IMG/VR virus record: IMGVR_UViG_3300046003_007892
Location: 176,364-240,363 of that record
Strand: one strand, 5' to 3'
Length of the DNA stretch: 64,000 bases
The notes under the pieces were generated by a model. That model was not told the DNA's origin. It ran no database searches and saw nothing but the letters and a program-made list of their open reading frames with translations. A program made the translations under genes and the position numbers. Positions 12,438 to 61,531 of the stretch are shown one piece after another; the first letter of the stretch is position 1; the number at the start of each line of letters is the position of its first letter.

Positions 12438-12938
12438 ATGCGGTATATCGATCTCATCTTGGAGAACCATCTCGACGAGTCTCCGCTCGACGATGACGTC
12501 ATCATCCACAATCCGTCTATCGCGGACATCAACAACCTCCGCACTCTAAGTGTGATGAGCCGGGAAGGCGTCCGCGCCATCCTGACGCCGACCGACATGT
12601 ATGTCTGGAACGGTCACTGGATGAGCACCCGTGAGGCCTGCCGGGTGCTCGGCCTCTCACCAGATTACGTTTGTGCTCTGCGGCTTCTCCGCAATGGCAT
12701 CGAATGGGACGTTGACCGCTTCAACAACGGGCGAACGCCCGACGCGAGGTTTGACCTTCGGGAAGAACACGGCATCATCTATCGGAACGTGACCCTGAAC
12801 CGCCTATACGGTCACGACTTCCCCATCCTGGGTGATGACGGTGGTCGGCTATTCGACATCTACGACGAAGAGGAGGGCGGCTTCGGAGTAGATTTCTTCT
12901 TCGATGACGATGACGTCCTGCGCACCGACGACGAGTAG
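12438..12938 (+). CDS. Putative virion-internal protein, NP..LR..YVW module
   Basis: Leader MRYIDLILE; HNPSIADI...VRAIL..TDMYVWNG; paralog of 13262. Confidence 0.7.
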   Translation: MRYIDLILENHLDESPLDDDVIIHNPSIADINNLRTLSVMSREGVRAILTPTDMYVWNGHWMSTREACRVLGLSPDYVCALRLLRNGIEWDVDRFNNGRTPDARFDLREEHGIIYRNVTLNRLYGHDFPILGDDGGRLFDIYDEEEGGFGVDFFFDDDDVLRTDDE

Positions 12939-12939
12939 G

Positions 12940-13236
12940 TCATTCCGATCTTAGCTTGAACTCCGCGAGGTCTCTCCGTACCCAGTCCGCTTCCCCGTGT
13001 TCGAGCCTGATGGTGACGTCATCTGCCGATACGTCCAACTTCAAATGCCATCCCCGCTTACTAGATAGCCACCACAGGCGTCCAATCACGCCCATGTCGT
13101 GAAGAAGACGAACTTGGTGGGCGTCGCAGCGATGATCTCGGTAACCATTTCCGGGATATTCGAATTCAAGTGCCCACATGACCAGCAAGGCTTGTTCGGC
13201 ATGAGTGAACTCGTTGTTCGTGAACGTCGTCGCCAT
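12940..13236 (-). CDS. Hypothetical protein
   Basis: Fills gap between the two paralogs; start MATTFTN. Confidence 0.5.
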   Translation of the reverse strand: MATTFTNNEFTHAEQALLVMWALEFEYPGNGYRDHRCDAHQVRLLHDMGVIGRLWWLSSKRGWHLKLDVSADDVTIRLEHGEADWVRRDLAEFKLRSE

Positions 13237-13252
13237 CCGAATCCTATAGGGT

Positions 13253-13258
13253 AAATAT
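13253..13258 (+). promoter_or_regulatory. Putative late promoter TAAATA
   Basis: 3 nt before ATG 13262. Confidence 0.6.
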
Positions 13259-13261
13259 GGG

Positions 13262-13777
13262 ATGCGCCGCAATATCGATCTCGCTGCAAGTCTCCTCGAA
13301 GGTATTGCCTACCAGGACCACAACTTCGTCATTCTGCAAAACCCGACCGTGGCCGAGATCAAAAGCCTGCGGGGCAAAACCATGGCACCAAACAGCAAGG
13401 ACGGCCTTCGTGCGATTTTGACTGCGACTGACCTGTTCGTCTGGAACGGATACTGGATGACCCACCACGATGCCGCCCAGGTTCTCGGCGTTGCCGAACA
13501 CGCCGACTTGCACCTCAGGGGTAAGCGGATTGACTGGGACGTGGACGCTTTCGAGGGCAACTGGGACACCGAGGGACCGATGGCGGATAGGATGCGGACC
13601 CAGCATGCCATGATCGTCACGCATCCGACGCTGCTCCGCCTATACGGCGGGTCCATCTCCGTAATGGGCACCGACTATACTGAGGGCCCGGACGCCCCGT
13701 TCGACATTTACGATTCGCATGGTGGCGGTCGCGGGTACGAGTTCTTCTACGACGAGAACGACAACCTCAAACGCTGA
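13262..13777 (+). CDS. Putative virion-internal protein, NP..LR..YVW module
   Basis: Leader MRRNIDLAASLLE; QNPTVAEI...LRAILTATDLFVWNG; paralog of 12438. Confidence 0.7.
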   Translation: MRRNIDLAASLLEGIAYQDHNFVILQNPTVAEIKSLRGKTMAPNSKDGLRAILTATDLFVWNGYWMTHHDAAQVLGVAEHADLHLRGKRIDWDVDAFEGNWDTEGPMADRMRTQHAMIVTHPTLLRLYGGSISVMGTDYTEGPDAPFDIYDSHGGGRGYEFFYDENDNLKR

Positions 13778-13778
13778 T

Positions 13779-13963
13779 TGCGACCCGGTGGGGCGCCGTC
13801 CATCTCTGCCCCGCACGCTCTGTGCCGAAGGCGAAACTTTCGGGATACGCATCCCCATCACGAGCATCACGGTTGGTTGAGCCGCCTACTGACTTGCTGG
13901 GCCGACGTCCGAGTATCCCCTCGACCGGGCGGCCACATCGCCAGCTTTCTCCACCGGGTCGCC
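13779..13963 (-). ncRNA. Candidate ~185-nt structured ncRNA of unknown class
   Basis: Perfect 12-bp terminal stem GCGACCCGGTGG/CCACCGGGTCGC (13780-13791 / 13951-13962), internal helices, cUUCGg loop on minus strand, upstream promoter placing +1 at the stem, no credible ORF. Confidence 0.6.
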
Positions 13964-13968
13964 ACTTC

Positions 13969-19445: not shown

Positions 19446-19454
19446 ACTATTTAC

Positions 19455-23544: not shown

Positions 23545-23563
23545 GGTGGTTATGAACCATCCT

Positions 23564-23845
23564 ATGAGAACGTTCCTCCACATCATGGAGGCCACTCGCC
23601 TTGAAGAGTGGGGACAGGTCGTACCGGGAGTGAATACCTCGGTTGACGTTGGCCCCGGCGAGATCGCAACACAGGCTGCAAAGTTCGGAAACGACGTCAG
23701 TGAGAAGGGTGTCCCCCCGCTACTGATGACCCAAGATGAAGACCAGCCTACCGAAGAAAAACTTGACGAAGATGGCGACGATGGTATCCCCGATCTGGAA
23801 GTCGCCTACCAGTCTATCTTGACCAAAGGAACATCAGGACTATGA
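23564..23845 (+). CDS. Small acidic protein with LxE leader (start could be 23552)
   Basis: MRTFLHIMEATRLEE. Confidence 0.6.
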   Translation: MRTFLHIMEATRLEEWGQVVPGVNTSVDVGPGEIATQAAKFGNDVSEKGVPPLLMTQDEDQPTEEKLDEDGDDGIPDLEVAYQSILTKGTSGL

Positions 23846-24824: not shown

Positions 24825-26504
<1,680 letters not shown>

Positions 26505-28457: not shown

Positions 28458-29228
28458 ATGCGCGACTTTCTCAAGATCATCATGGAAGCACAGGCCCCGA
28501 AGCCCGGCTTCGCGACTACCCACCGCTACCCGGACGGTGAAGTCTATCACACTGAATACGACGCCCCCGAAGAGGGAACTCGGGTTCGTGATCGCAACAC
28601 CGGTCGAGAAGGTGTCATGCAAGGCTGTGAGCCGAGCCACCACGGTGAAGAGTATTCGCCCGATTGCTTCGTCGCGTGGGACGATGATCAGGACCCCAAA
28701 ACTCCCGAGACCCCCTATGTCGCGCGCACGACCCTGGCTGAGATCGAGCCCCTCGAACCGGCCGCCACGTCTGCCGCCCCGATGGCCGAAGGCCGCGCAG
28801 GAGCGTTCGCCCGCCTCCTCATGCTGGAACGCCTGAACAAGCCCGCCGAGACTCCAGTCTTCAAGGGCAAATATCACGACGTCGTTCCCAACAGCGGTAA
28901 GTTCGACGTCATCGTCCGTAACACGGGCAAGGTTGTCGGCACTGGTTATGGCTCCACTGCGGAGGCCATTGGTAGCGCGAAGCTCAAGGACTCGCGTTCG
29001 GATGGTGAAGACGTCGGCGCGAATTTGAGAAACCTGGAAGTCGCAGAAAGCGAACACCATGAAGTCGTTCCCAAGGGGACGAAGTTCGACATCCGTGACC
29101 GGTCTTCTGGGCGCACGGTCGGTATGGGATATGACAGCGAGGAAGCGGCGGAAGAAAGCGCGGTCCTTAAAGATCGCCGCAAAAACGGCGAAGACGTCGG
29201 CAACGGGATGCGAAACTTCGACGACTAA
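28458..29228 (+). CDS. Putative virion-internal protein with tandem C-terminal domain duplication
   Basis: Leader MRDFLKIIME; two copies of H.VVP...KFD.....G..VG.GY.S...A...A.LKD.R..GEDVG...RN. Confidence 0.7.
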   Translation: MRDFLKIIMEAQAPKPGFATTHRYPDGEVYHTEYDAPEEGTRVRDRNTGREGVMQGCEPSHHGEEYSPDCFVAWDDDQDPKTPETPYVARTTLAEIEPLEPAATSAAPMAEGRAGAFARLLMLERLNKPAETPVFKGKYHDVVPNSGKFDVIVRNTGKVVGTGYGSTAEAIGSAKLKDSRSDGEDVGANLRNLEVAESEHHEVVPKGTKFDIRDRSSGRTVGMGYDSEEAAEESAVLKDRRKNGEDVGNGMRNFDD

Positions 29229-29560
29229 CTGATCGTCGCGGTTTCCAGGCCGGGCTTAATCTCCATCTCGATCACCGCTGCATCTCTGTACGATGCCGAT
29301 GCGCGAACGCGGATGTTGTCCGCAATATCGGCGAACGCCTGTATTTGCTGGAGGGATACCGCCTCATAGAAGGTGATCTCGGCTTCGCGGCTGCCGTGGT
29401 CGTAATGGACCGGGTGGGCTGTTTCGATGAGGTCGATCTGCATCTTGGCGCAAACTCCCTTCAGCATGGAGATGATCTTCATCTCAGCCTCCGCGCTGGC
29501 ATCCTCTGCCGAGAAGTCGAGTTCAGATTCAGCGAGCAGGAAAGAGATGTAATCGGTCAT
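29225..29560 (-). CDS. Hypothetical protein with LxE leader
   Basis: MTDYISFLLAE, directly after TAAATA. Confidence 0.65.
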   Translation of the reverse strand: MTDYISFLLAESELDFSAEDASAEAEMKIISMLKGVCAKMQIDLIETAHPVHYDHGSREAEITFYEAVSLQQIQAFADIADNIRVRASASYRDAAVIEMEIKPGLETATIS

Positions 29561-36800: not shown

Positions 36801-38017
36801 TCGGTGTTGCCGGTGACCATTCCGCCGACGATGTCCTGAATGGCTTCGACGAACGAGGTGTCAGTGGTGTTGAGGCCGACCGTGATGTCCGCGCTCTCCG
36901 AGGTGCCACCCGACACCGTGATGCCGTTCGAGCTTCCCGCGACCGTGCGCACGTATGCACCCGATGTATCTGTGCCGAGCACGATTGCGTTGGGAGTCAC
37001 GGTCGTGTTGATCGTGACGTTGCTTAGGCCGACTACGCTAGCCGTGCCCTGGACCGCGCCCGCCAAAGTGACGGAGAAATCGTTGGTAGTGAAGTTGAGC
37101 TTACCGGTGCCCTCGGTGGCGTCGTTATAGACGACAGAAATACCAGTCTCGGTGTTGCCGGTGACCATTCCGCCGACGATGTCCTGGATTTCTTCAGCCG
37201 TGTAGGCTTTCTCGACGGTGACCTTCAGATTTGAGGTAGAGCCATCGGTTTCGACAAGAACACCAGAACCAACGAAGTTGATCTGCGTAATTGAGTTGGC
37301 GAGGCCGACCGTGATGCCTTCGTCCTTGACTGTCATGCGACCGAACGCGCTCGACGGGAAGTTTTCGAACTGCGACGTGGCCGAGTTGTAGATGAGAACG
37401 TCGCCATTCAGAAGTGTGCTGGTGGTGACGTCTGTCAGGTCTGCTAGGCCCGCGCTCAGCGTAAGGGTGACGTTGCTAGACAGTGCACCACCGCCGCTGA
37501 GACCAGCACCAGCAATTACGGTACGCGAGGTCGGCACGGCTCCGATTGCAGTTGTGGTCGGAAGAGCGTGGACGTGATCAGCGCGCGAAACCGAGTTAGA
37601 AACACCGATTGCGGCTGCGCCGAGATTTGCAGGAGCGGAGCCGCCGTATACGACGCCCACCGTTAGCGCGCCACCCGCTCCACCATCGCTGAGGACGACG
37701 CCTGCGGCGGCCTGTAGACGACGTTCGTTCGGGAGGGCGGCTTCTGCCGAGACGACCAAGTAGGTGGCGTTGGGGTCCGCACCAGAAACAGTGCCGCCGC
37801 CTCCGCCGCTGATGCCTGCCGACGTTGCTTTTGCAGCGAAGGTTTCGTTGGTGATGTTGCCTAGGTCAACACGGGCTGCCTCGAATCCGTTCGCAGTGAT
37901 ACCGTCGTGGATATGAAGAGACTTGTTGGTCGTATTGACAGTAATTTCAGCCTGCGCACCGACGAAGGTCGAGTGTTGTGACGCTGTGCCTTTACGAAGT
38001 TTTAGCTCTTTAGCCAT
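33845..38017 (-). CDS. Long tail fibre/appendage with ~115-aa repeats and C-terminal intramolecular chaperone (peptidase G2-like)
   Basis: N-term LKLRKGT...EITVNT..KSLHIHDG, Thr/Gly/Val-rich repeats, GSGLDAD.L.G motifs, C-term YADVAERY...GTV..FGG...VALVGRVPCKV.G...KGDLL...GTIIGKALE. Confidence 0.85.
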   Translation of the reverse strand: MAKELKLRKGTASQHSTFVGAQAEITVNTTNKSLHIHDGITANGFEAARVDLGNITNETFAAKATSAGISGGGGGTVSGADPNATYLVVSAEAALPNERRLQAAAGVVLSDGGAGGALTVGVVYGGSAPANLGAAAIGVSNSVSRADHVHALPTTTAIGAVPTSRTVIAGAGLSGGGALSSNVTLTLSAGLADLTDVTTSTLLNGDVLIYNSATSQFENFPSSAFGRMTVKDEGITVGLANSITQINFVGSGVLVETDGSTSNLKVTVEKAYTAEEIQDIVGGMVTGNTETGISVVYNDATEGTGKLNFTTNDFSVTLAGAVQGTASVVGLSNVTINTTVTPNAIVLGTDTSGAYVRTVAGSSNGITVSGGTSESADITVGLNTTDTSFVEAIQDIVGGMVTGNTETGITVSYFDDVAGGLGKLNFAVPTTNLVLNGAVSGNGVLTLGSTLTITTTSNIDFGNSTVTGNYVRTVATDSTANGIVVTGGTATGADAIVSLNLGAATFVEGIQDIAATLFTTTHSGLTAVYDDTLGKMTLDVNDFSMTLTGPITGTATVTNLGNTSIATTLAANAVTLGTHTAGNYVATIAGSGAISVTGSGSESAAITVSLDDTNTAFREAIQDIVGTMVTGNTQNGITVSYFDDVGLGGGKLNFQTPNTTVTLVGAVSGSATIANGASISITTVANSITLGANTIGNYVASVTAATVANGIVVVGSAAEGSTPTVALDLAAATFVEGVEDIVAGLFSRATHSGITAVYDDTLAKITLDANEFEITLIGAVTGTAWVNNLTSAVIATNLAANGVTLGTHTTGNYLMNLTGSNGLVVTGAGVESADASITIDSTNTAFREIIQDIVGTMVTGNTANGVTVTYFDDATVGVGKLNFQTPDTAVTLAGAVTGTATIVNGGAITITTVPAANALTLGTHTAGDYVATIVAGATPNGIVVTGAGESAAATVRLDMTASTFVEGVEDLVAGLFSRATHSGITAVYDDALAKITLDVNDFSVTLTGAVTGTTTITNLANGSIATTLAADAVTLGTHTTGNYLATATGTNGVTVSGSGTESAAITIGLDSTNTGLQEIIQDIVGTMVTNGTKTKMTATYTDGGVGAGVLNFGVSDGAGSGLDADLLDGFNSTYYTDITSRLGYTPVSNNNGLFSSGSFQMQKPSSGTSLTHNIQFATSQNSLIIYHNDGTNNKGIQLDLLACANGSTSILWHSGNDGSGSGLDADVLRGAAPSTAATASTIAQRDSSGNLTAGVFTGTATSARYADVAERYEADAIYEPGTVMVFGGNKEITQCLRLDDTRSAGVISTAPAYMMNSDAGSDETHPYVALVGRVPCKVKGPVRKGDLLTTSDLAGHAETSLHPMLGTIIGKALENFDGETGVIEISVQRS

Positions 38018-41000: not shown

Positions 41001-42144
41001 CGGTGTCTCCGGTCTGTGTTGCCGTTACCCCGTTGCCACGGAAGTCCAAGACTTTCGCGGTATTTGGCGTGCCAACCGGCGTGCCTTCGTCGCGTATAGA
41101 CAAACCCTTGAGGAAGTTTGCGGTCGTCGTGATGGTCGTGTTGCCCAAGTAGTGGACCAGACCAGAGCCGGTGACGTCCCCAGCCAGCGTGATGGTGAAG
41201 TCGCGCGGGACAAGCGAAAGAGTGGCGTTGTTCTGGTCGTAGTAGACCTGAATACCGGTCTCGGATTCTTCGAGCGTATCAGGGTCGCGAATGCTGCCCT
41301 GGACCACGGCGCCGATCTCGTCGCGGACGTCCTGGATACTGACGCCGAGATCGGGGTTGAGGACAGTTTCGATCTCAATGTCCTGGAGGTTGCTGACCAT
41401 CATAGAGCCAGTGACTGCACCATGAAGGTTGACATTAAAGGTGCGGGGTACGAACGCCGCGTGGATGTCTCCGGGACCATAGATGACCGAAATACCGTTA
41501 GCGTGCGGGCCACCCAGAAGGGCCGTCGCATAGGTGCGAAGACCAAAAAGGTTGACCGCGTCCGTATCGTCAGTCGGTGCCTGATCGACCGTCAGCGTCC
41601 CCGTCACCCGCAGGGTAGCGAATGTGCCATCTCCGGTTTGACCGGCCGAGTTGACGAGCTTCCAACCACCAACGGTGTAAACTTCGACCCCACCCAGCGT
41701 GGTGTTGAAACGCAGCATGCCTTCTTCGCCGGACAAGGGCCGGGTCTCGGACGCGCCGGTTGGGAGCTTCAAGTAAGCCGTGGACGGAATTTCTACCCCG
41801 CCCTCGGAATCAGTGGTGACGACCGTTCGCCACCCAGTTCCATCGTGGAACTGCGGAACACCCGCGTAGCGGAGCATGCCCGCCGAAGGAGTTACTGATG
41901 GGCTGCCACTCGGAACGATGAAGGCGTTGTTGAGGAAAGACAGAGTGGTGAAGACTTGGCCTTCTGCGCTCAAGCTATGGTTGACCGCAAGAACGCTCGA
42001 AGTCGTGTTGGTGGCTGTCTGAAGATTTTCGATGGCGCGTTTGATCACCGTGAAGTTATCACGGAAACCTTGCGATGGCTGATCTACGCCTCTTACAGGG
42101 AAGTTCTCATTGTAAGTGGCGCCCACGCCTGTATCAATCGCCAT
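38032..42144 (-). CDS. Long repeat-rich virion structural/fibre protein
   Basis: N-term FPVRGVDQPSQGFRDNF..IK; about 8 repeats of DVRDEVG..IRG..RDP.T..E.ETGI.VYYD..NNTLS..PR.F.ITL.G.VTG. Confidence 0.8.
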   Translation of the reverse strand: MAIDTGVGATYNENFPVRGVDQPSQGFRDNFTVIKRAIENLQTATNTTSSVLAVNHSLSAEGQVFTTLSFLNNAFIVPSGSPSVTPSAGMLRYAGVPQFHDGTGWRTVVTTDSEGGVEIPSTAYLKLPTGASETRPLSGEEGMLRFNTTLGGVEVYTVGGWKLVNSAGQTGDGTFATLRVTGTLTVDQAPTDDTDAVNLFGLRTYATALLGGPHANGISVIYGPGDIHAAFVPRTFNVNLHGAVTGSMMVSNLQDIEIETVLNPDLGVSIQDVRDEIGAVVQGSIRDPDTLEESETGIQVYYDQNNATLSLVPRDFTITLAGDVTGSGLVHYLGNTTITTTANFLKGLSIRDEGTPVGTPNTAKVLDFRGNGVTATQTGDTATVTVTGLSLGDVRDEVGSFIRGTVRDPNTEQETESGISVYYDAVNNTLSLSPRTFSITLSGAVTGTATITRLNSVTMVTSADFLKGLTAFDEGNPLVGTPQTVQEINFIGNGVSTTQVGSRLNVTIPQALTLGDVRDEVGGFIRGSIRDPQTLIDTETGILTYYDASNNTLSIAPRDFKITLAGAVRGNAVVHYLGNTTITTEADYLLGLNVQNEGTPTGAANQISTLNFIGTGVTAVQVGNTASISINSLSTLDIQNQVGNLIRGTIRDPQTLAETESGIAVFYDAANNTISVAPRTFSITLTGAVTGTGTVSRLNNVSIATSSNYITGLTGYNEDLLTGGTQTIQAINFVGGGVDAIQSGSTLRVNIPTPLAASDIRDEVGTFVRGSIRDPQTLQESETGILVFYDQSNNTLSLAPRDFTITLTGDVTGTATVHYLGNTTINTSTNFIEGLTTRSSGTATGAAESVRNINFTGPNVTTTQVGNTTTVSVSALSQQDVQDQVGSLIRGTIRDPQTLQESETGIFVYYDQSNNTISLAPRAFKVTLAGAVTGNATVTSLNDITITTSSNYITGLTAFDGSNQLGLAHSVKQVVFTGGAITATQSGDILTVDAPILLTNTDVRDEVGGFIRGTSRDPNTNLPTETGITVNYDDENNVLELGAREFDITLTGAVTGTARVVRLNSVQIATSSNFIEGMTVKQGGVLQGTKVKELNVVGGTATVANGVATISVASGSSPAQVKTLVRDLMIGDRGGIQVTYDSSNEFIKMAIKPLQITLAGAVTGNGTMLFDGSADTGKVTIVTESFADRGVEVRDEGTTAGTAVTSINFVGGGVTSAVSVDGEIATVYIPNSPANEKFLLIDNGSANVPNARKLTAGVGITINDGGPGGNVTISAQSDEILGNTQFLLNGVLIGERPSIDVQATDEIFPEFVDDAANGKVVLKFYSLNDGWHRQDKIDFGSITDKYGASLDMGTMEGGIIEADINLGSII

Positions 42145-42174
42145 TTTTCCCCAACCCAATCAAGTAGTGTGGGG

Positions 42175-43018: not shown

Positions 43019-43678
43019 ATGGAATACGCACACGTTCTCGAACTCGACCCCCAGACCCAGAAGGTAGCACTCGACCAGTTCGCCAAGCTGGCCGATGCCC
43101 AGCGCGGCGTTCCCGAAAACATGGGCGGAGGTGGGCCGTCTTCGATCAACCCCGCCAAGACGCATGCCTCCGGCCTTTGGCATCACGCTACTGAGCATAT
43201 CGGCGATCTCACCCACCGTATGGCCCAGCGCAACTGTGAACGGTGGGCCTTCGGCTATGAGTGGGTGGACCAGAAGGTGGTGGTTCAACTCCGGTCTCTG
43301 CGCTCCCGCTACGGCTACGAGAAAGAGGTCATGGAGAACCTCCGCAACAATCACCGATACTACAAGTCCCCCATGCCCTTCGAGCAGTGGGTCAAAGAAT
43401 GGGAAGAGGCTGGGGATAATTTCGCGCGCGCCCACAGGGCCCTCACGGTCTGGAACATCGCGCAGTACCATGCCCGCGAGGCCGCCATCGCCATCGGTGA
43501 GCGCAAATACGAGAAGACCATCAAGCACCTGTCGGAGCTTGAACAGCGTCTCGACACCGAGGAGAACTGGATTCGATACGCGGGTGGGTGCTGTCTGACC
43601 CCGGACGGTCTCGTCACCATGTACTCTCGCGGCATCCAGGAGTCCGCCTACGTGGACCGTCTGCTCAAGTCTCTCTAG
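43019..43678 (+). CDS. Putative virion-internal helical protein (EHxGDLxHR domain)
   Basis: Leader MEYAHVLE; homologous to middle domain of the 60026 protein. Confidence 0.7.
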   Translation: MEYAHVLELDPQTQKVALDQFAKLADAQRGVPENMGGGGPSSINPAKTHASGLWHHATEHIGDLTHRMAQRNCERWAFGYEWVDQKVVVQLRSLRSRYGYEKEVMENLRNNHRYYKSPMPFEQWVKEWEEAGDNFARAHRALTVWNIAQYHAREAAIAIGERKYEKTIKHLSELEQRLDTEENWIRYAGGCCLTPDGLVTMYSRGIQESAYVDRLLKSL

Positions 43679-46363: not shown

Positions 46364-46868
46364 TTGGTCCTTGGTTGGCTAGCATTCCGGCGAGGCTCTT
46401 CTCTGCATCCTGCTGTCGCTGGCGCATGAGGTCTTCGTGGGAATGGTAGCTCTGTTGGTTTTGAAGTTTCAGAGCCCGGCAGACGGGCTTGTAGCGGGTG
46501 ATCATGTCCATTTTGACGCCCGTATCGGTATTGAACAGGACGTCCATCCCCTGCCCGTGCAGGACCGTCTCGTCGCTTTTCTCCCAGTAGTCGAACGAAG
46601 AGAAATCAGAGCCGGTGTCGGCAATCAGGCATTTCGCGGCAGTCTCGGCGAACGCCGGACCAACCTCACCCATCTCAATCAAGTCGTCGAGGACGAAATC
46701 ATGCTGCTGGCTCGCATTGCCGGACCAGACGATGAGCTTCGACGGTCCAGCCCAGCCGCGAAGGTCGTGCTTCTTGACCAACTCGGTGAGTTCCCAATGC
46801 GAGGGGTTGACCCACAGCTTGGCGTCGGGGAGTTGGATGACCTGAACTTCGCGGATGATTTCTTTCAT
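46356..46868 (-). CDS. Putative virion-internal protein, NP..LR..VW module
   Basis: Leader MKEIIRE; WVNPSHWEL...DLRGW...LIVWSG. Confidence 0.65.
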   Translation of the reverse strand: MKEIIREVQVIQLPDAKLWVNPSHWELTELVKKHDLRGWAGPSKLIVWSGNASQQHDFVLDDLIEMGEVGPAFAETAAKCLIADTGSDFSSFDYWEKSDETVLHGQGMDVLFNTDTGVKMDMITRYKPVCRALKLQNQQSYHSHEDLMRQRQQDAEKSLAGMLANQGPNG

Positions 46869-46872: not shown

Positions 46873-47343
46873 TTATTTAGCCACCGTGGTGATGATGGTC
46901 TCGGCCAGGGCTTCGATGCTGGACACCAGCGGGATGTCGAAACGGCGGCAAATGATCTGCACGTTCCCCCGACGATAGAAGCCCCTCGGGCAACAGACCA
47001 CGACCTTGCCCGAACGGGCGGTCAAACCCAGTTCAGCCATGGTGACCGGGGCCTGACTGCCGGGAGCGAAATAGAAGACGATGTAGGTCGCCGCATCCAA
47101 GGCGTCGAGTTCCCACTCGACCTGAGCCCGGAACACCGAGTCCGAGATGTCGTTGTCGAGGTCCGCGTTCCAGTTGTCGCGGCGCGGATTCAGGACCGTG
47201 ATGTCGTGCCCGGCGAACCGGCCCGTGATGTCGGCTTGCCAGTCCACGGCCCGCCCGTTGTCGATGCTGCCCGCGAGGAACACGCTCGCCTGTCCCTCGG
47301 GAAGGACGAGGGCGTGGGGTGGTTTGATGACGGTGAAGGGCAT
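46873..47343 (-). CDS. Nucleoside 2-deoxyribosyltransferase-like protein
   Basis: VFLAGSI, DWQ, VLNPRR..W, QVEWE..AL..A, AP.T..ELG. Confidence 0.8.
   Translation of the reverse strand: MPFTVIKPPHALVLPEGQASVFLAGSIDNGRAVDWQADITGRFAGHDITVLNPRRDNWNADLDNDISDSVFRAQVEWELDALDAATYIVFYFAPGSQAPVTMAELGLTARSGKVVVCCPRGFYRRGNVQIICRRFDIPLVSSIEALAETIITTVAK
46874..46879 (-). promoter_or_regulatory. Putative late promoter TAAATA
   Basis: 5 nt before ATG 46868. Confidence 0.55.
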
Positions 47344-50948: not shown

Positions 50949-53236
50949 GTAAATGATTGCTCTTTTTCGCGCTTCTTCGATTTCGCACGAGCGGAGGACT
51001 TGGCGAACGTCATTCCGTCCACGAACTTGATGCGGTATTTGGAATGCAGATCGTTTTCCTCAATGAGGCGGTCCACAATCGCCATGGCCTCGAAGCTATA
51101 CCGGTAGCGGCTCACCAGCATGGAATTCAAGGTTCCGTCTTTCCACGCCCCGTAGTGGGCTTCAACGTCTTTGTCCCGAAGGAGCAAGAGACTGGAGCCA
51201 CGCGGAATTTTCAGGGACGGGGAGTTGACCAGCCATTCGGATTCATCGTTGAAAACTTTCGAGAGTCTCGCGAGCGCGTCCACCAGAGCGACCTGAATGT
51301 CTTCGACGCGCAGTTCGGTCTCGAAGTCCTGCGTGGACCAGTTGTTCCACTCTTTTGCCGCCGCCAGGAGGCTCTGGTAGAGGGCCTGGGAGAACTCCTG
51401 CGGGCTGTTCGGGCGGAAGCCCAAACGGTCGAACTCGTCTCCGGCCTTCCAGCCCAGATTGTTGTATTCGATGGCGTGGGCGACGTTGGGGTTGATCGAT
51501 TTCATGGTCGGCGTCATGTAACCGACGATGTTGTTGATCATGCCCGTGCGACCAAGCTTGGTCTCGGGGTCCTTCGCCCAGATGCGATAGATGGCGCGGA
51601 GGTTGTCGGCGCAGAGATAGTTGGGGTCATCGTAGGCGACCTTCTCGATCTTGTTAGCAGCGAACACAGCCTTGGGGTCCATGACGAGGCAGCAGTTGCC
51701 CGACGTATGGAAGAAGTTGAGCATGATCTGACGGCTGTCCGAGATGCCCTTGACGCCGTGGAGTTCCATGTTGGCGATGTCTTGAAGAGCCCGCATGCTT
51801 TGCTCGTGTTCGCGGTCGCTGGTCGGCAGGCGAGTGACGAGCCAGAACTTGGTCGGGTCGGTATTTTCGACCAAAGTCTTCTGACTTTCTTCGACCTCTT
51901 CTCGTCCGCGAATCATGCGCAGGAAAGAGGTGGTCTTCATCATTCTCTCAAGGCCCTGGCCCGAGGCCGTGAGGGCGTATCCTTCGAAGTTGATCAGCGA
52001 GCCGCCGCGCCAGTCGGTCCCTGCAATGTGGGGCTCGTGTGAGACGGGGAGGAAGATGTGGAAGCGGGTCGGGTAGTGATCATACGAAATCCCCAGTGCC
52101 TTCATGACGTTGAGGTGGATGTCCGCAGACGCTTGCCACACATAGGTGTTCTCGCCATCCGATACGCCTCGGAGATCGTCGCCTCGGTCCATCATGGCCA
52201 GCACTTCCGCCTTGCGGGGGTTCACGGTCACCTTGACGCCTTCGGCCCATTCGATGCGGCCTTCTGAGAGGTAGCCAGGACGCTTGCCTCCCAGCATGCA
52301 GATTTGCTCGCTCGCGCCTTCCTGGCGGGCTAGAGCGGTATAGAAGGCCGGGTTGGCGATGAAGGTGCCTTCGCCGCCGTAGATGGCCTCGGGGAGCATT
52401 GAGAGGGTCTCGTCGAGGAGGGTCGGACCCAGGAGTTCGGGAACCACCATACCGGAGCATCGGGCGAGATCGGCCGTCTCCGGGGTGACGTAGCCCCAGA
52501 GGGGGAGTTGCTGACTGGCGGTCTCGAACCCACGGAGGACCATCTCGGGCTTACCAACGGCGGCCATAACCTTGAACATCCCGCTGCCCTGCATGCGGGT
52601 CGCGAGGTATCCGGTCTTGTCGCCGTAGAAAGTCCAGTTGCGGGCTCGGCTCTCGAACTTGGCAGCCGTCCAGTCACCGAACACCCGATGGGCTTCCTTG
52701 ACCCCGATGGCGTTCGGGCCCGACGACGCACCTTCGAGGATGGCGTTCGTGCGCAGCTTTTTCTCTTTGGTCTTGTGCTTGCCCGTGGAGGGTTCGGCGA
52801 AAATCTCTGGCCCGAGCAGGATTTTGCCCCGGTAGGGTTCGATGCTTTCGATGTCGAGCTTGGAGCCGTTGTAGGTGATCGTGACGTGCGAGTTGTAGTC
52901 ATCAAACTTCCACGCGGCGCCGTGATCGAGAAAATCCTGCCAACGGGAGTTGAGGTGATCGTTCTGGATGGTGAGCACAATCGCGCCGCCATCGAACTCA
53001 ACGATCTCGCGCTTGTCTGCGTTCTTGACGCTAACTTCTTCTTTGCCCTTGCCGCATTCAGACCAGACTACTGGGTCCGCCGAATGGCAAACAGTGACGT
53101 GGAGGTTGGACATGACAGTCCTCATACCCTGCTCTTCTGCCCACTCTTCAATATCGGCAATGTTCAACACTTTCCTCTTTACATAAAGGGGTCGTGCTTT
53201 TGCTAGTTTCGAGGAGGCAAGTTCATCTAGTCGCAT
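50945..53236 (-). CDS. Multidomain protein: N-terminal Acb1/T4 gp57B-like 2H phosphoesterase, GNAT-like module, NP..LR..YVW module, possible ART-like C-terminal module
   Basis: Start MRLDEL (763 aa); PLYV.RKV, HVTVCHS, GA.WKFDDYNSHVTITYN, LGPEIFAE = two HxT motifs. Confidence 0.8.
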   Translation of the reverse strand: MRLDELASSKLAKARPLYVKRKVLNIADIEEWAEEQGMRTVMSNLHVTVCHSADPVVWSECGKGKEEVSVKNADKREIVEFDGGAIVLTIQNDHLNSRWQDFLDHGAAWKFDDYNSHVTITYNGSKLDIESIEPYRGKILLGPEIFAEPSTGKHKTKEKKLRTNAILEGASSGPNAIGVKEAHRVFGDWTAAKFESRARNWTFYGDKTGYLATRMQGSGMFKVMAAVGKPEMVLRGFETASQQLPLWGYVTPETADLARCSGMVVPELLGPTLLDETLSMLPEAIYGGEGTFIANPAFYTALARQEGASEQICMLGGKRPGYLSEGRIEWAEGVKVTVNPRKAEVLAMMDRGDDLRGVSDGENTYVWQASADIHLNVMKALGISYDHYPTRFHIFLPVSHEPHIAGTDWRGGSLINFEGYALTASGQGLERMMKTTSFLRMIRGREEVEESQKTLVENTDPTKFWLVTRLPTSDREHEQSMRALQDIANMELHGVKGISDSRQIMLNFFHTSGNCCLVMDPKAVFAANKIEKVAYDDPNYLCADNLRAIYRIWAKDPETKLGRTGMINNIVGYMTPTMKSINPNVAHAIEYNNLGWKAGDEFDRLGFRPNSPQEFSQALYQSLLAAAKEWNNWSTQDFETELRVEDIQVALVDALARLSKVFNDESEWLVNSPSLKIPRGSSLLLLRDKDVEAHYGAWKDGTLNSMLVSRYRYSFEAMAIVDRLIEENDLHSKYRIKFVDGMTFAKSSARAKSKKREKEQSFT

Positions 53237-53261: not shown

Positions 53262-53267
53262 TATTTA
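53262..53267 (-). promoter_or_regulatory. Putative late promoter TAAATA
   Basis: 25 nt upstream of ATG 53236. Confidence 0.55.
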
Positions 53268-54340: not shown

Positions 54341-54679
54341 ATGTTCTGGAAAAAGAAAAAGGTCACCGAGATCACTGCACCGGTTCCCGATGAACCCCGC
54401 GTCCGCACCGTCGTGTTCGATGCCGACACGTTGGAGCGCGCCTATCGCGATGTGAAGCATGTCGGGTTCTCGCGCTCAGTGATGAACTCCGACAACGTCC
54501 TGGCTCTCCTCATGCTGGCCAGAATGGGGCTCGAAACAGTGCCGGGGAAAGTCTTCACGCTGTCGATCACGACCGGCGCGGCCAGTCTGGATTCTCTGGC
54601 CGACGTGGCTGGGGTGCCCCAGATGCGTCCGGCAACTCCTTCAGAGGTGTTCGAAGAATTGCACCCGCCGCTCAGTTAG
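54341..54679 (+). CDS. Hypothetical protein
   Basis: Abuts upstream stop. Confidence 0.55.
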   Translation: MFWKKKKVTEITAPVPDEPRVRTVVFDADTLERAYRDVKHVGFSRSVMNSDNVLALLMLARMGLETVPGKVFTLSITTGAASLDSLADVAGVPQMRPATPSEVFEELHPPLS

Positions 54680-55257
54680 GGGAACCGCTGCACCCAGCGT
54701 TCACCAGCCGCGATCACCGCCATCGTTTCGGCGTCGTTTGGAAGGGCTTCACGAACGCATTCGCAGTAGCGGGCGAAACCTGCTCGGTCGATCATCAGGC
54801 CCGTGATGTAGCGGTCCAGGTTGTTCACGTCGCCGAAGACGCATTCTTCGAGTTCGTCATCCCCGTCGCCAAAATCCACCATTTCGAGACCATCGCTGTG
54901 GAAGCATACGGAAAAGAACTCGTAGTCTCGGTGTAGGGCTTGTCGGTTGAACTCCATGACTACGCCTTGGCCACCAGCAATCATTTCTGCTTTGTGGGAT
55001 ACGAGTTCGTGATCTTCCTCGAACTTGGTGTAATCGAAATCGCTATACTGGGATAGCTGGCCCCGCCGAGCGAGATCAATTGCGCTCCCGCAGAAACGCT
55101 TCGCGACCTCGGGGTCGAGGGTGAAGCTAGCTTGGTCTTCGCCGCCGTAGGCGCCAATCATGTTGTGATGTGCAATGAAGCAGAACCCCGTCATGGACGT
55201 CCCGTGATAGAGATGCGCCGGACGCTGTGATTCCGTCAGATTCATCCACTCGCGCAT
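54676..55257 (-). CDS. ADP-ribosyltransferase-fold protein
   Basis: Leader MREWMNLTE; LYHGTS, SFTLDPEVAKRF, GVVMEF, DELEECV. Confidence 0.65.
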   Translation of the reverse strand: MREWMNLTESQRPAHLYHGTSMTGFCFIAHHNMIGAYGGEDQASFTLDPEVAKRFCGSAIDLARRGQLSQYSDFDYTKFEEDHELVSHKAEMIAGGQGVVMEFNRQALHRDYEFFSVCFHSDGLEMVDFGDGDDELEECVFGDVNNLDRYITGLMIDRAGFARYCECVREALPNDAETMAVIAAGERWVQRFP

Positions 55258-55592: not shown

Positions 55593-55868
55593 TGCCAGAC
55601 GAAGCTTCCATTCGAAAAAACACGCCTGTGCACGGACGAGATCGCTTGCTTGGGTGAAGTGCCAGGGTCGCCCTATTCCTCGCATGACTGACCAGCCGGG
55701 ACCGAATACGGCGTCGGACGTGGTGCCGTGGTGAACCCAAACTCCGATCTCGTCCATTACCGCTCGTCCATCAATGATATAGCGATGGATGGCACGGCTA
55801 GGCCGCGTGATCTTCACCCACTCACGCAGGATTTCGAGGTTCTCCGGCGTGAGTGGGTGTTCGGTCAC
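55590..55868 (-). CDS. Hypothetical protein
   Basis: GTGA overlap with cca stop; start VTEHPL. Confidence 0.5.
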   Translation of the reverse strand: MTEHPLTPENLEILREWVKITRPSRAIHRYIIDGRAVMDEIGVWVHHGTTSDAVFGPGWSVMRGIGRPWHFTQASDLVRAQACFFEWKLRLA

Positions 55869-57100
55869 AGGCCCTGTTTGGCCAGCAGGCCGTTCAGGAA
55901 GTCGTTGGTGCGGTTCATGTCGAACCAGACCTTGACCCATTCTTCTTCGGTCGCGCGCAGGATGTCGCCCATGGCCTTGCCGGGCTTCATGCCACGGTCG
56001 ATCAGCATCGCCCCCGAGATCGGGAACACGCGGGGAGCCAGACGGCCCACCTTGTTGATCTGATCGGCCAGCGTATCGAAATCGAACGGCAGGCCACAGG
56101 CCCAGGTCAGGGCCATGCGGTCACGAACGGCCACGACGCCATCGCGGTAGATGTGCTGCTCGATGCTGTCGAACCACGCGTCTCCGCCCATCTCGGTGAA
56201 CGGTCCCTGCTTGATCGCGTTGGTGACCCGCTGACGCGAGGCGTTCGAGAACCGCAGGCGAGCCATGACGTCCCCGCAGGCCTGCATATCCCAGTTGAAC
56301 AGGGAGGCGAAGCGGGGGGCCCAGTCGGTCGTGGCTTGACAGACGCGGGTGAACACACGGGCGTCAAACGCGACCGGGAAGATGGTCGAGTAGACCTCGG
56401 TGCGCTGCATGGCCTCCAGAGCGGGGACGGGGTTGCCCGCGCCCAGCAGCTTGGAGATTTCCTTCTCGATGCGTTCGCCGGACAGGCTCGCGATTCCGTC
56501 CCGTTGCGCCTTGCAGGCGGCCAGGGCTTCGGCGGAGATGTCCGCACCCAGAACCGCCATGAAGCGGAACAGGCGCAGGCTGCGCAGGTGATCTTCGCGC
56601 AGACGCTGCTCGGCGTCGCCGACGAACTGGATACGACGGGCCTTGGCGTCTTCAATGCCGCCGCGCGTCGGGTCATAGACGGTTCCGTCCGGGCCCAGAT
56701 ACAGGGCGTTGAAGCGGAAGTCGCGACGTTGCGCGTCTTCGGCCCAGTCCTTCGTAAAGGCGATCACGGCGCGGCGGCCATCGGTCTCGACGTCGCGGCG
56801 CAGCGTCGTGAACTCGTAGGCGGTCTTGTTGATGATGACCGAGACCGTGCCGTGCTCGATGCCCGTGGGGATGACATCGAAACCTTCCAAGCGGAAGATG
56901 TCCGAGATCAGCGTGGGTTCCAGAGTGGTGGCGATGTCGATGTCGCCGCACTGGCGGCCCATGATGGAGTCACGCACGCACCCGCCGACGAAGCGGTAGG
57001 AATCCGCAGGCGCATGCACATCCATGATCGCGATGATCGATTGGATGGCCGGGGTCGAGAACCAATCCGGGCGCAGGGTCAGGGTCTTCGGCGTGCTCAT
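55865..57100 (-). CDS. cca: CCA tRNA nucleotidyltransferase (class II)
   Basis: FVGGCVRD, DIDIATT, GIEHGTV, EFTTLRRDVETDGRRA, DAQRRDFRFNALY, EDHLR.LR.FRF, SGERI..E..KLL. Confidence 0.92.
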   Translation of the reverse strand: MSTPKTLTLRPDWFSTPAIQSIIAIMDVHAPADSYRFVGGCVRDSIMGRQCGDIDIATTLEPTLISDIFRLEGFDVIPTGIEHGTVSVIINKTAYEFTTLRRDVETDGRRAVIAFTKDWAEDAQRRDFRFNALYLGPDGTVYDPTRGGIEDAKARRIQFVGDAEQRLREDHLRSLRLFRFMAVLGADISAEALAACKAQRDGIASLSGERIEKEISKLLGAGNPVPALEAMQRTEVYSTIFPVAFDARVFTRVCQATTDWAPRFASLFNWDMQACGDVMARLRFSNASRQRVTNAIKQGPFTEMGGDAWFDSIEQHIYRDGVVAVRDRMALTWACGLPFDFDTLADQINKVGRLAPRVFPISGAMLIDRGMKPGKAMGDILRATEEEWVKVWFDMNRTNDFLNGLLAKQGL

Positions 57101-58008: not shown

Positions 58009-58392
58009 TTAGTTGTCGTAGGGGTCGATGCCGTTCCACAGGTGATTGCCATAGGAATCGCCTGCGTTGTCCTGACCGTCTTCGCGATGAGTGATCGGGA
58101 TGCCCATACGGTCGGTTCCAGAATAACCGGAATGCCCATCGTCGCTATAGGCGGAGCCGACTGCACCCAGGCCGGGGTTCGAGATACCGGCGTTTTCCAG
58201 AGCCGCAACGGCGACGTTGTAAAGACCCAGAGCGGCGGCGGCATAGAGGAACAGCTTGGCGAGTTTGTTTTTCCCGCCGCTTTCTGCGAGAATTTTGTCC
58301 ATCGCCTCTGCGAGGAGGTCTTTCGACTTCGACTTGGATTTTGACTCCACGAGAGGCGTTTTGGCCTCGATGATGTCGATCAAATTTCTCAT
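58009..58392 (-). CDS. Small protein with LxE leader and hydrophobic helix
   Basis: MRNLIDIIE..PLVE..LLAE; AAAGGA RBS. Confidence 0.65.
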   Translation of the reverse strand: MRNLIDIIEAKTPLVESKSKSKSKDLLAEAMDKILAESGGKNKLAKLFLYAAAALGLYNVAVAALENAGISNPGLGAVGSAYSDDGHSGYSGTDRMGIPITHREDGQDNAGDSYGNHLWNGIDPYDN

Positions 58393-59176: not shown

Positions 59177-59486
59177 TAAAATATTCCAAACAGCATTCCG
59201 TCCAACCATCGGCGTCCGGGATGTCTACCTGCATCACGCCGACGAGGTCGTAGATCGATATCGTGATATCAAACTTTGACTGGTCAGCGGGGAACGCCAC
59301 GCCTCGTAGAAATACGTTTGGATATGTTCGCCCACCAACGTGGTAAACGATTCGTGTCGGCTCGACTTTCCGATCTAGGGCGTAATCCATGGCAACCGCC
59401 CACAGGGGTCGGTCATCGACAGGGACTCGCAACGCCTCGACGCGGCAACTGGGGGCGTGGCGGAGTTCAGGCGTCATCGTTTTCAT
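59163..59486 (-). CDS. Hypothetical protein
   Basis: Start MKTMTPEL; TATAAAT upstream. Confidence 0.5.
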   Translation of the reverse strand: MKTMTPELRHAPSCRVEALRVPVDDRPLWAVAMDYALDRKVEPTRIVYHVGGRTYPNVFLRGVAFPADQSKFDITISIYDLVGVMQVDIPDADGWTECCLEYFTMRL

Positions 59487-59558
59487 CTCTAGGCTGGGCT
59501 GACATTTATACCCCAAATCGTCAACCCAAACAAAAATCGAAATCGCTGCATTTTCTTG

Positions 59559-59587
59559 TTGCGGCCCTCGGAGGAGATGGGTAGAAA
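59559..59587 (+). promoter_or_regulatory. Putative promoter of large ncRNA copy 2
   Basis: TTGCGG-N17-TAGAAA. Confidence 0.5.
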
Positions 59588-59593
59588 GAGATT

Positions 59594-60002
59594 GTTCCGG
59601 CAGCGGACGGCTTCGGCCCCCGCCGCCACGGAGAAACCCGAAAGGGCCAACACGAAGAAGGAAGGGGTTCGCCCCAACCCGAAGGAACTAAAGGACAGCG
59701 GATAACACCCGATGGCCTCAAGGACTGGAATACCGAAGTGACGAGAACGGCCCTCGAAACCGTTCGCAAGACCCTGGTCTCAAGTCACGTAGGATACGGT
59801 CTAATCCGAGGGCTCACATCGTAAAGTGGGCAGGCTCAGCTAGGGCCGATATACCGGTTTGAACCCCGGCTAGCTAGGGCCAGAAGCCCCTACCGTCTCA
59901 CGACGGAAATCACCTTCTAGGCCTCTTGCTTAGGCCTTATGTGACGCGAACGCGTCGCCCACATATTAAGGGCCCGTGGACATGATTAGCCACGGGCCCT
60001 TA
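59594..60002 (+). ncRNA. Candidate large structured ncRNA, copy 2 (~410 nt)
   Basis: UUCG and GAAA tetraloop hairpins, 13-bp terminal hairpin, homology to 58531-58923, no credible ORF. Confidence 0.65.
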
Positions 60003-60015
60003 GCTTGTCTGGGCC

Positions 60016-60021
60016 TAAATA
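60016..60021 (+). promoter_or_regulatory. Putative late promoter TAAATA
   Basis: 4 nt before ATG 60026. Confidence 0.6.
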
Positions 60022-60025
60022 TGAG

Positions 60026-61531
60026 ATGCGTCGGTTCATCGATCTCTCTGAGAAATTCCACCACGGCTTCGTCCCGACCTACAATCGCGGTAAGCCCTGC
60101 GAGGTGTTCAAGAACCCCGACCGGTCTGAGGTCCGCAAGCTGAAGGCCGATATGGATGAGGTTCGCGCCTATCTGGTTGGCGACGACATCTTTATGTGGA
60201 ACACCTATCAGTCCCTGCACCGCACGGTGCACGACGAACTCAAGCTTCCTGCTGACGCTCTCCCGATCATCATCTACGGCGACGTGGACGACGAGGCCTC
60301 GGTTGTGGTCACCGACGCGAGTAGGTCCACGGTCTGGCACCATAATGCCGAGACGCGTGGAGCCATCATGGCCCATCCCTACTTTGCCCGCTGCGAAGAC
60401 GTCGAAGTCTCTTACTATGACGAAGCCATCGTCGGACAATGGCATGACCCCAAAGGCGAGAACGAGGATTTCGTTGCTCATTTCATGGGTGATGAATACG
60501 GCGACGACAGTATCGACCATGGTGCCGAAGACCCCGACGACGATGGCTTCACCGACGAAGAGCGGGCCCTGCACGAGGGCATGGCCCTGAACCTCTTTGA
60601 ACTCTCGGGCCCGTCTCAAGAAGCAGCTAATCAGAAATTCGCCGCCTATGCGAAGAGCCAACGAAACGGCAAGCCCGAACTCTTCGGCACGTCACAGCGG
60701 GCCAACCCAGGCCTCTTTCACGGCACCGGCTATTTCACCTGGATGTGTGAGCACGTCGGTGATCTCTCCCACCGCATCGCCGACAACGCCGTCAACTCCA
60801 CCTGCGGGTTCGAGACCATGAACGAGAAAGTCGGGAAGGCTCTCGACAAGCTCCGCTCAGGCTCCTTCGGCCGCACGTTCGCGAGGACGGTAGTGGAAAA
60901 TGTTCGAAACAATTATCATTACGGAGTTGAGGTCGGTCGCACGACCGGCTCCTTCGAGGAGTTCGAGACCGAGTGGCGCGACGCCTCCAAGCTCTATGGC
61001 GCCGCACACGCTGCCCTCCAGCCCTTCAACGATGCCCAGATGCATTGTCGGGATGCGGCGGTCGCGCTCGGGAACCATGACTGGCTGAAATGCCTGAAGC
61101 ATCTCGAAGTCCTCGCGGCCCACCTCGTAGATCGCGAATCCTGGCAGGCCTACGCTGGGGCCTTGGCCTTCACTCAAAATGAGAGCTTTCGCGGACGTCT
61201 GCCATTCGACCCCGAAGACGCAGTGACGAACCCGAGCGCGAAACGTCTGATGGCCATGGTGAAGAATGCCACCCATCAGGATTTGCGCGGCCTCTACGAC
61301 GGAACCAACCTGTATTTCTGGGACGCCAGCCTTGGCGTTCACTCCCACGTCGCCCCGGCGATTGGTCTCGAATACGATTATCTCAAGAGGCTCAACGTCG
61401 ATATCGTTTACGGCGGCGTGGAGATCACATGGGACGAGGGTGTGCCCAAGGAGGCCATCGCGAAACGATACGGTGACCTGGGTCGATTCAAGACCGCCCA
61501 GACCTTCGAGTTCGAGGGTGCCCTGTCATGA
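60026..61531 (+). CDS. Modular putative virion-internal protein (A-B-A architecture)
   Basis: Leader MRRFIDLSE; two NP..LR..YFW modules flanking an EHVGDLSHR module. Confidence 0.75.
   Translation: MRRFIDLSEKFHHGFVPTYNRGKPCEVFKNPDRSEVRKLKADMDEVRAYLVGDDIFMWNTYQSLHRTVHDELKLPADALPIIIYGDVDDEASVVVTDASRSTVWHHNAETRGAIMAHPYFARCEDVEVSYYDEAIVGQWHDPKGENEDFVAHFMGDEYGDDSIDHGAEDPDDDGFTDEERALHEGMALNLFELSGPSQEAANQKFAAYAKSQRNGKPELFGTSQRANPGLFHGTGYFTWMCEHVGDLSHRIADNAVNSTCGFETMNEKVGKALDKLRSGSFGRTFARTVVENVRNNYHYGVEVGRTTGSFEEFETEWRDASKLYGAAHAALQPFNDAQMHCRDAAVALGNHDWLKCLKHLEVLAAHLVDRESWQAYAGALAFTQNESFRGRLPFDPEDAVTNPSAKRLMAMVKNATHQDLRGLYDGTNLYFWDASLGVHSHVAPAIGLEYDYLKRLNVDIVYGGVEITWDEGVPKEAIAKRYGDLGRFKTAQTFEFEGALS

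Follow-up and report, generated by a model that had tools for sequence, protein, structure and literature searches.

The final 64 kb of a 240,363-bp IMG/VR virus record (IMGVR_UViG_3300046003_007892; GC ~0.59) raise the question of what a short protein module, repeated in several genes, does for the phage that encodes it. In this stretch of 64,000 nucleotides (nt), hereafter the window, a first-pass annotation made from the sequence alone had described an unnamed unit of about 60 amino acids (aa) that recurs six times in five genes, has a near-conserved His and Arg, and is preceded in every host gene by the hexamer TAAATA; a ligand-binding or catalytic site, such as a sponge for nucleotide signals, was suggested for it. 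Our tentative answer, to which we give a little less than an even chance, is that a large family of late-made proteins is built around the module, and that these would be packaged in the capsid and injected with the DNA into the next host cell, serving early counter-defence or host takeover. Coordinates refer to the window unless prefixed with G000, which marks those of the whole 240-kb record, and genetic code table 11 was used.

The six copies are indeed one homologous module. A single hidden Markov model (HMM) built from them recovers each one in a six-frame search of the 240-kb record at E ~1e-24 to 1e-31; it also finds four more copies beyond the window, and the rest of its output is noise. 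The copies can be aligned without strain, and the motif, written as a regular expression, occurs in exactly six places across the whole record. Family-wide profiles find 10 copies in 8 genes of the record (E 1e-12 to 1e-36), with a possible eleventh at a borderline E of 0.15-0.35. This recurrence far exceeds chance. Copies within one genome are 13-45% identical to each other.

The host genes are of different builds. P0001 (12438..12938, +) encodes 166 aa with a pI of 4.4 and begins with the leader MRYIDLILE; its module covers aa 1-134 (nt 12438-12839) and is followed by a strongly acidic C-terminal tail. P0002 (13262..13777, +; 171 aa; leader MRRNIDL..LLE; module aa 1-140, nt 13262-13681) is 45% identical to P0001 and is the protein that was modelled. 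The most divergent copy lies in P0003 (46356..46868, −; 170 aa), at aa 13-134 (nt 46467-46832). The longest open reading frame (ORF) of P0004 (50945..53356, −) is 803 aa, and its true start is likely Met41 (53236; MRLDELASS...), which gives 763 aa as in public gene calls. P0004 joins an Acb1 domain (anti-CBASS 2H phosphoesterase; aa 56-188, 52793..53191, −), the module (aa 373-494, 51875..52240, −) and ~310 aa without assignment. Its Acb1 domain matches Pfam PF23474 at E 9.7e-30, with 103.6 bits where the cut-off is 27, and keeps both H-x-T motifs, as HVT at aa 86 and 157. In P0005 (60026..61531, +; 501 aa from the ATG, within an ORF that runs from 60005), two modules flank a middle domain, called domain X here, which has no family match. 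The first module (60026..60415, +; leader MRRFIDLSE) occupies aa 8-137 of the ORF from 60005, domain X lies at 60590..61174 (+), and the second module (61178..61522, +) occupies aa 392-506 of the same ORF. A solo homologue of domain X, preceded by TAAATA, is encoded at 43019..43678 (+), and BLASTP aligns the two at 36% identity over 198 aa (E 3e-31). Beyond the window, P0006 (G000 165299-166534, −; 409 aa) has two copies, the second without a leader, and single copies are found in a 137-aa protein (G000 90601, within 90598-91011, +) and a 169-aa protein (G000 163231, within 163201-163737, +). The region between the two modules of P0006 looks GNAT-like by eye (RHDGKGRQIM, WYERLGFEF); NCBIfam and PHROGs did not flag it.

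The unit of about 60 aa proved to be part of a longer domain. The whole domain measures ~120-140 aa, and the stretch first reported is its best-conserved core; the core leads into a hairpin region that is variable, beyond which there are a conserved Asp and, near the C-terminus, a helix of the form N-P-x-F-x-R-x-F. Across 426 aligned family copies, the core has N (87%), P (97%) and S/T (83%), then x-x-E (60%), R (91%) then G (57%), Y (68%), x and W (94%) followed by D/N and A, and H (99%); further on there is D (68%), then N/H-P and R/K (81%). The near-conservation of His and Arg that had been noticed in six copies therefore holds across the family. The NP-S/T-x-x-E element is a classical helix N-cap and is thus probably structural.

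AlphaFold models of P0002 residues 1-140 reached a predicted local distance difference test score (pLDDT) of 79 and a predicted template-modelling score (pTM) of 0.77 with a 10-copy alignment, and pLDDT 85 and pTM 0.81 with an 82-copy alignment. Both have the same topology, in which three beta-hairpins are each followed by a helix, with a last helix pair and strand. Arg50 is placed opposite Trp61 across the hairpin of strands 3 and 4, and His68 at the start of helix 2, as taken from the DSSP strand register of the model. Seven conserved polar positions look like a ligand or reaction pocket. The binding or catalytic site that had been suggested is upheld in part, in that the pattern of conserved His and Arg fits it and one copy is fused to Acb1. 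The modules are acidic (median pI 5.3), which argues against a histone-like role in packing DNA.

No curated family matches the module, in agreement with the first-pass annotation. Pfam (E<=1, P0001-P0005), PHROGs (E<=0.1) and NCBIfam (E<=0.1) gave nothing over the module, and a profile of 82 copies had no match among PDB sequences. No large polyvalent-protein-associated domain (LPD) was matched over the module in P0001-P0005 by Pfam at E<=1, nor did LPD models match in P0011, P0033, P0034 or P0054, a comparison that covers the LPDs with Pfam models. When P0002 or the 10-copy alignment served as query in a word-index protein search, only the window's own proteins came back. Fold searches were made with both AlphaFold models. 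In Foldseek no PDB entry reached E<=0.001, the best being at E 0.27, and exhaustive VIA-align over 48,161 PDB representatives gave a best Z of 3.8, which the tool's own note places below the usual top score of models that lack a clear Foldseek match. A likeness to ADF/gelsolin was dropped, its Z of about 3 being under any useful level. Matches in BFVD were all borderline (best E 5e-3) and to uncharacterised phage proteins, and the ESM Atlas gave a single all-viral cluster (TM 0.57). A lead to short portal-protein fragments, which came from ESM Atlas features (score 0.92, few shared features), was rejected because no portal structure was among the PDB fold matches. The predicted fold is without a detectable solved relative. 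We would like to note that newness of the fold cannot be claimed on this basis, because weak matches do not prove difference.

The family is large. An exhaustive profile search of 1.84 billion representatives retrieved 1,276 metagenomic cluster representatives at E<=1e-3, of which 213 reach E<=1e-10 and 25 reach E<=1e-30. Many of the relatives are giants with 5-10 tandem copies, among them proteins of 2,722 aa with 10 copies, 1,729 aa with 8, and 1,060 and 1,045 aa with 7 each. One 7-copy protein shares its contig with UvsX, DnaB, Thy1 and SegE-like genes, and one solo copy is on a 561-kb phage contig. When 90 non-module segments of the relatives were searched against Pfam, ART-PolyVal was found 7 times, Imm5_like, AAA_33/Zeta_toxin and DUF6934 3 times each, Acb1, ADPrib_exo_Tox, GNAT and a 2',5'-RNA-ligase-type 2H domain twice each, and NUDIX, ddrB-ParB, DUF192 and DUF5661 once each. 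P0011 combines GNAT with nine module copies at a stricter cut-off, and P0146 contains Imm5_like and ddrB-ParB. Ahead of the internal copies in the relatives, a [LIVM]-x-E tripeptide occurs 14-30 aa before the NP motif in 220/283 cases, against 44/280 in a control window, with IDE-A, LTE-A, LSE-S and VTE-G as typical strings.

The N-termini of the module proteins are part of a wider pattern. A leader peptide with the consensus M-R/K-x-Y/F/W-I-D/E-L/I-x-E begins ~35 genes in the 240 kb, including those inside operons; examples are MRYIDLILE, MRAYIDLMETA, MRDLIDLVEAA, MKTYFEIVAES and MKTYADILVES. About 20 of the leader genes have TAAATA 4-5 nt before the ATG. An alignment of homologues has Y/F/W at column 4 in 92%, L/I at column 7 in 94% and E at column 9 in 91%. 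Other phages contribute 83 homologues in which the module starts close to the N-terminus, and most of these have the leader. Within the record, two clear ART-PolyVal proteins, a cell-wall hydrolase and many proteins without assignment start with the leader as well. Since module-free proteins have it, the leader is a signal independent of the module.

Eight leader genes of the window, which start with an M-R-x-x-I/L-D/E-L-x-E type of leader, are without a module, and none of them has a Pfam match; a set of ten leader proteins scanned with Pfam likewise gave nothing. Three of the eight lie downstream of P0005 on the plus strand, at 61528-61944 (MRLAEIMERAG), at 62654-63478 (MRAHIDLAANIL; TAAATA at 62644) and at 63486-63998, which runs past the window end (MRTIELFEAPLG; TAAATA at 63476). 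The others are at 23552-23845 (+), 28458-29228 (+), 29225-29560 (−), 54676-55257 (−) and 58009-58392 (−). The protein of 63486-63998 contains LDGNHRYRIAKAKG, which resembles a ParB/ddrB-ParB nuclease motif; this ParB-like look of DGNHRY is a visual lead only, because Pfam gave no match at E<=0.01.

TAAATA had been said to stand before every host gene. This is so for four of the five, at 12428..12433 (+) and 13252..13257 (+), each 4 nt before the ATG of P0001 and P0002, at 46874..46879 (−), 5 nt before that of P0003, and at 60016..60021 (+), 4 nt before that of P0005; in P0004, however, it is at 53262..53267 (−), 25 nt before the internal Met41. Other TAAATA-ATG examples in the window, besides the two at leader genes given above, are at 23539 and 29570 (−). 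In the record TAAATA occurs 45 times per strand, 34 times with four nucleotides (N4) and 10 times with five (N5) before an ATG. Composition would predict 0.5 occurrences of TAAATA-N4-ATG, and other spacings are seen 0-3 times each. TAAATA is strongly associated with the leader (20/37 against 26/1,756 candidate starts; odds ratio 78, p 1.6e-24). The TAAATA genes without a leader are virion proteins (phrog_10938, the tail sheath phrog_11196, phrog_12928 and phrog_18596). TAAATA would thus not be special to module genes but appears to be a late-gene signal in common with structural genes. Neither a -35 box nor any further conserved base was found upstream of it, the fixed gap to the ATG leaves no room for a Shine-Dalgarno site, and the second codon is CGN in most TAAATA-ATG genes.

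This arrangement looks like a T4-type late promoter placed for leaderless transcripts. The T4 late promoter is a bare TATAAATA at -13 to -6 (PMC1524935). By the T4 rule, in which the last A is at -6, position +1 would fall at N5 spacing on the ATG's first base, the A, and leaderless late mRNAs, to within 1 nt, are plausible.

Other TAAATA sites in the record are of different kinds. A second class has the box cTTGTCAAG-TAAATA, often with ATAGAC ~15 nt upstream, and may be a separate (middle?) promoter class; its sites are at G000 23527, 64074, 69401, 70146, 84435, 95786, 135307 and 136264 (+) and, in the window, at 19453 (−) and 43009 (+). A third, TTGAC-N17-18-TAAATA, resembles sigma-70 promoters. 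Where TAAATA is away from an ATG (28432, 42180 (−), 53267 (−)), a C-rich start, TAAATAcyccacacta..., is followed by a normal transcript leader; AGGAG precedes the gene at 28458, and one of these TAAATA boxes precedes the giant ORF of 1,375 aa.

The leader also has a counterpart in T4. The T4 capsid-targeting sequence, MKTYQEFIAE, has 10 residues (PMC8442874), of which residues 4 and 7 serve targeting and 8 and 10 are required for processing; the site of the gp21 cut follows L/I-x-E (PMC9026906). The internal proteins of T4 are anti-defence proteins of diverse kinds with only this targeting sequence in common (PMC3012670), and the ADP-ribosyltransferase Alt is packaged likewise (PMC9503650). 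Similar to T4, the phage described here has about ten N-terminal residues in common among otherwise unrelated proteins, with an aromatic residue at position 4, a hydrophobic one at 7 and an L/I-x-E end (most visibly in MKTYFEIVAES and MKTYADILVES), a putative late element of TAAATA type directly upstream, and a cargo that includes ADP-ribosyltransferases. Unlike in T4, the leader is mostly MR... and not MKT..., there are ~35 leader genes per 240 kb and not a handful, the promoter box abuts the ATG, pointing to leaderless mRNA, and packaging and cleavage are predictions from sequence. No likeness in sequence to the T4 internal proteins was observed.

The partner domains of the relatives point in the same direction as the leader. 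ART-PolyVal, ddrB-ParB and 2H domains are hallmarks of polyvalent proteins, which are predicted to be carried in the virion and injected (Iyer et al., PMC5512222); head-packaged polyvalent proteins have the same kinds of partner domain (PMC5512222, PMC9503650), and one polyvalent protein with 12 ART copies is a precedent for a repeated domain (PMC5512222). Module relatives likewise are found in giants with ART-PolyVal, ddrB-ParB, 2H/Acb1, GNAT, kinase, NUDIX and immunity-like domains, for which delivery with the DNA and early action would be predicted as well (PMC5512222). Polyvalent proteins combine two to 15 conflict-related domains in one polypeptide, hallmark domains among them, and relatives such as P0011, P0146 and those with the seven ART-PolyVal segments are of this build; the window proteins have 1-3 domains. 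Unlike polyvalent proteins, the window phage spreads its domains over many small leader-tagged proteins and not one giant, and we propose processing by a prohead protease and not by embedded peptidases.

Taken together, the mechanism that we tentatively propose would run as follows. TAAATA, with no -35 box and 4-5 nt before the ATG, would drive expression late, together with the structural genes and probably from leaderless mRNAs. The N-terminal M-R/K-x-Y/F-I-D/E-L-x-E would act like the T4 targeting sequence, taking the protein into the prohead core, and a prohead protease of the T4 gp21 type would then cut it off behind L/I-x-E. This protease could, in other phages, also divide giant polyvalent-type proteins into modules and enzyme domains in the head, and the [LIVM]-x-E before internal copies is suggestive of such a Glu-specific cut between units. 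Once injected, the module would act through a polar site made of the Asn-Pro-Ser/Thr helix cap, the Arg-Trp pair, the His and the later Asp and Arg. Most likely it would bind or hydrolyse a small phosphorylated or nucleotide-type molecule, or hold a host defence protein. A bolder version, in which the module is a new fold with a new enzymatic or ligand-binding activity and the commonest cargo of a leader-peptide injection system in huge aquatic phages, made in many of them as polyproteins of up to 10 units that the prohead protease cuts at L-x-E into single active modules within the capsid, seems doubtful to us; it would amount to a virus-style polyprotein strategy for anti-defence cargo.

Several results weigh against the injected-effector reading. 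The conserved L-x-E could equally well have a structural role in the first strand of the domain, since in the P0002 model it is at the start of strand 1. At the N4 spacing the T4 rule puts +1 on the T of the ATG, so a leaderless transcript would need a shift of 1 nt. The modules are acidic, unlike the basic IPII and IPIII of T4. Among the 22 Pfam families found in the 90 partner segments there was no MuF, portal, N4 RNAP or metallopeptidase domain; fusions to MuF, portal and metallopeptidase domains are typical of classical polyvalent proteins. No member of Peptidase_S77, the gp21 family, turned up in the 240-kb fragment, whose completeness CheckV puts at ~45%; the family is encoded by Atu_ph07, Phosso and PA5oct, the three closest cultured relatives. 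The module was not found in the cultured phages that we searched, that is, the phage records and these three relatives. Against 50,697 phage records, tblastn of P0006 gave no match, and tblastn of P0013 matched only through its non-module N-terminus, in Atu_ph07 and Phosso. The family profile, which as a positive control finds 10/10 copies in the module's own record, finds no module in Atu_ph07, Phosso or PA5oct. Finally, the locus is contained in no RNA run, and the matches of our 1,601-letter query covering the P0001-P0002 region are contigs only, which have no transcript ends. The pattern TAAATA-N4-ATGMG is also absent from Atu_ph07, Phosso and PA5oct.

The relationship to these phages is a distant one. 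The record encodes a virion protein of the tail sheath family (PHROG) that shares 39-41% identity with proteins of Atu_ph07 and Phosso and 32% with one protein of Pseudomonas phage PA5oct. Because of these identities of 32-41%, the record can be placed as a jumbo myovirus of the broad Atu_ph07/Phosso/PA5oct lineage, by this protein comparison a distant relative of Agrobacterium phage Atu_ph07 (490 kb; the genome of Sinorhizobium phage Phosso is 469 kb). The P0001/P0002 region is near-identical in contigs of at least 4 other lake-water samples. Within P0001 these contigs show 7 differences, 5/7 of them at the third codon position, and this bias indicates real coding genes under purifying selection. 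The gap between P0001 and P0002 (12939-13261, 323 nt) holds 5/13 of the lake-sample differences over 1.6 kb; a minus-strand ORF of 110 aa was noted there, at 12940-13272.

Of the alternatives, the one that fares best, although we think it unlikely, is that the module is a non-enzymatic protein inhibitor, each copy blocking a different defence nuclease or toxin of the host, much as GmrSD is blocked by IPI* of T4. In that case the fold would be held by the conserved residues, and specificity would come from the variable surfaces. The strong divergence of copies in one genome and the arrays of up to 10 are as expected from such a function, Imm5-like immunity domains co-occur, the modules are acidic, and the diverse anti-restriction internal proteins of T4 are a precedent (PMC3012670). 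Nevertheless, a scaffold that only binds would not usually keep a His in 99% of copies along with several other polar residues. We rank an injected effector with a binding or catalytic pocket above an immunity-like inhibitor, followed by structural cargo and then by a sponge.

Structural cargo of the capsid interior without a host target, that is, a packing, spacer or inner-body block like the phiKZ-type paralogues that aid DNA organisation or ejection, strikes us as quite unlikely. It would account for a paralogous family in a jumbo phage, for a TAAATA signal in common with virion genes, and for tandem arrays with a protease-type site before each unit; head proteins of phiKZ and SPN3US are cut after Glu (PMC9026906). 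The inner-body and ejection families of phiKZ, 201phi2-1 and SPN3US are likewise jumbo-phage paralogues; they lie inside the head, and a gp21-related protease cuts them after Glu (PMC9026906, PMC5694885). In contrast to those, the present phage is of an Atu_ph07/PA5oct-like lineage and the motif is L-x-E, not S/A-x-E. Moreover, acidic proteins bind DNA poorly, the module has host-directed enzymes as fusion partners (Acb1, ART, GNAT, NUDIX), and the closest cultured relatives, with similar virions, lack it.

It is also improbable, in our view, that the proteins are not packaged and act late in the producing cell, with an N-terminus that is a by-product of a leaderless translation start or a cytoplasmic localisation or chaperone tag. 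The fixed TAAATA-N4/5-ATG spacing with no Shine-Dalgarno room, the prevalence of CGN as second codon, the lack of a protease gene in the fragment and a GroEL-like chaperonin encoded by the phage itself would all agree with this. Yet the leader is conserved as amino acids across phages of different base composition and upstream sequences, L-x-E is found ahead of internal copies too, where there is no start codon, and the structural genes with the TAAATA-ATG arrangement have no leader.

The sponge of the first-pass annotation, in which each module would bind an immune signal of the cyclic-nucleotide or ADPR-derived kind and hold it back intact, is not supported and is very unlikely. The invariant Arg-Trp-His set, the fusion of one copy to Acb1, the NUDIX, ART and kinase domains of relatives and the many binding sites that many copies per protein would give speak for it, and a size of ~100-170 aa, conserved aromatic and basic residues and an anti-CBASS/Thoeris type of context recall Tad1, Tad2, Acb2 and Acb4. 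But unlike these sponges (Tad2 being DUF2829) the module occurs in tandem arrays of up to 10, has no sequence or fold likeness to solved chains, hence none to the sponge structures among them, and has a predicted late, packaged pattern that would limit the dose of proteins that must act stoichiometrically. Sponges are usually abundant early proteins. Because only a limited number of proteins can be packaged, catalysis, or inhibition of host proteins that are themselves scarce, is the more likely mode of action than sponging.

Other genes of the window include a GroEL-type chaperonin (Cpn60, E 5e-76; 24825-26453, −), a class-I lysyl-tRNA-synthetase-like protein that matches part of the Pfam model only (22-1185, +), and an enzyme of the CCA-adding/poly(A) polymerase family (55865-57100, −). 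ARAGORN found no tRNA genes in the window. Two adjoining giant ORFs at 33845-38017 (−) and 38032-42159 (−), of 1,390 and 1,375 aa, are probably tail-fibre or receptor-binding proteins by sequence; the first begins with Mtd_N, the N-terminal domain of the Major tropism determinant (E 4e-13).

Leader-targeted internal proteins and polyvalent injected effectors are a known kind of system. What appears to be undescribed, with LPDs compared through their Pfam models only, is the domain family itself, its scale, the arrays bounded by L-x-E, and the arrangement of TAAATA, ATG and leader in a giant phage of Atu_ph07-like kind. If the injected-effector reading is true, a widespread anti-host domain, with at least 1,276 sequence clusters, has been without a name, without a Pfam, PHROGs or NCBIfam model and without a similar structure, and the family would be directly tied to the counter-defence enzymes Acb1, ART and NUDIX. 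The invariant Asn-Pro, Arg, Trp and His set offers clear targets for mutagenesis. The capsid-targeting principle of T4 would extend to giant phages of another lineage, and TAAATA, then ATG, then MRxYIDLxE would list the injected arsenal of such a phage from its genome alone.

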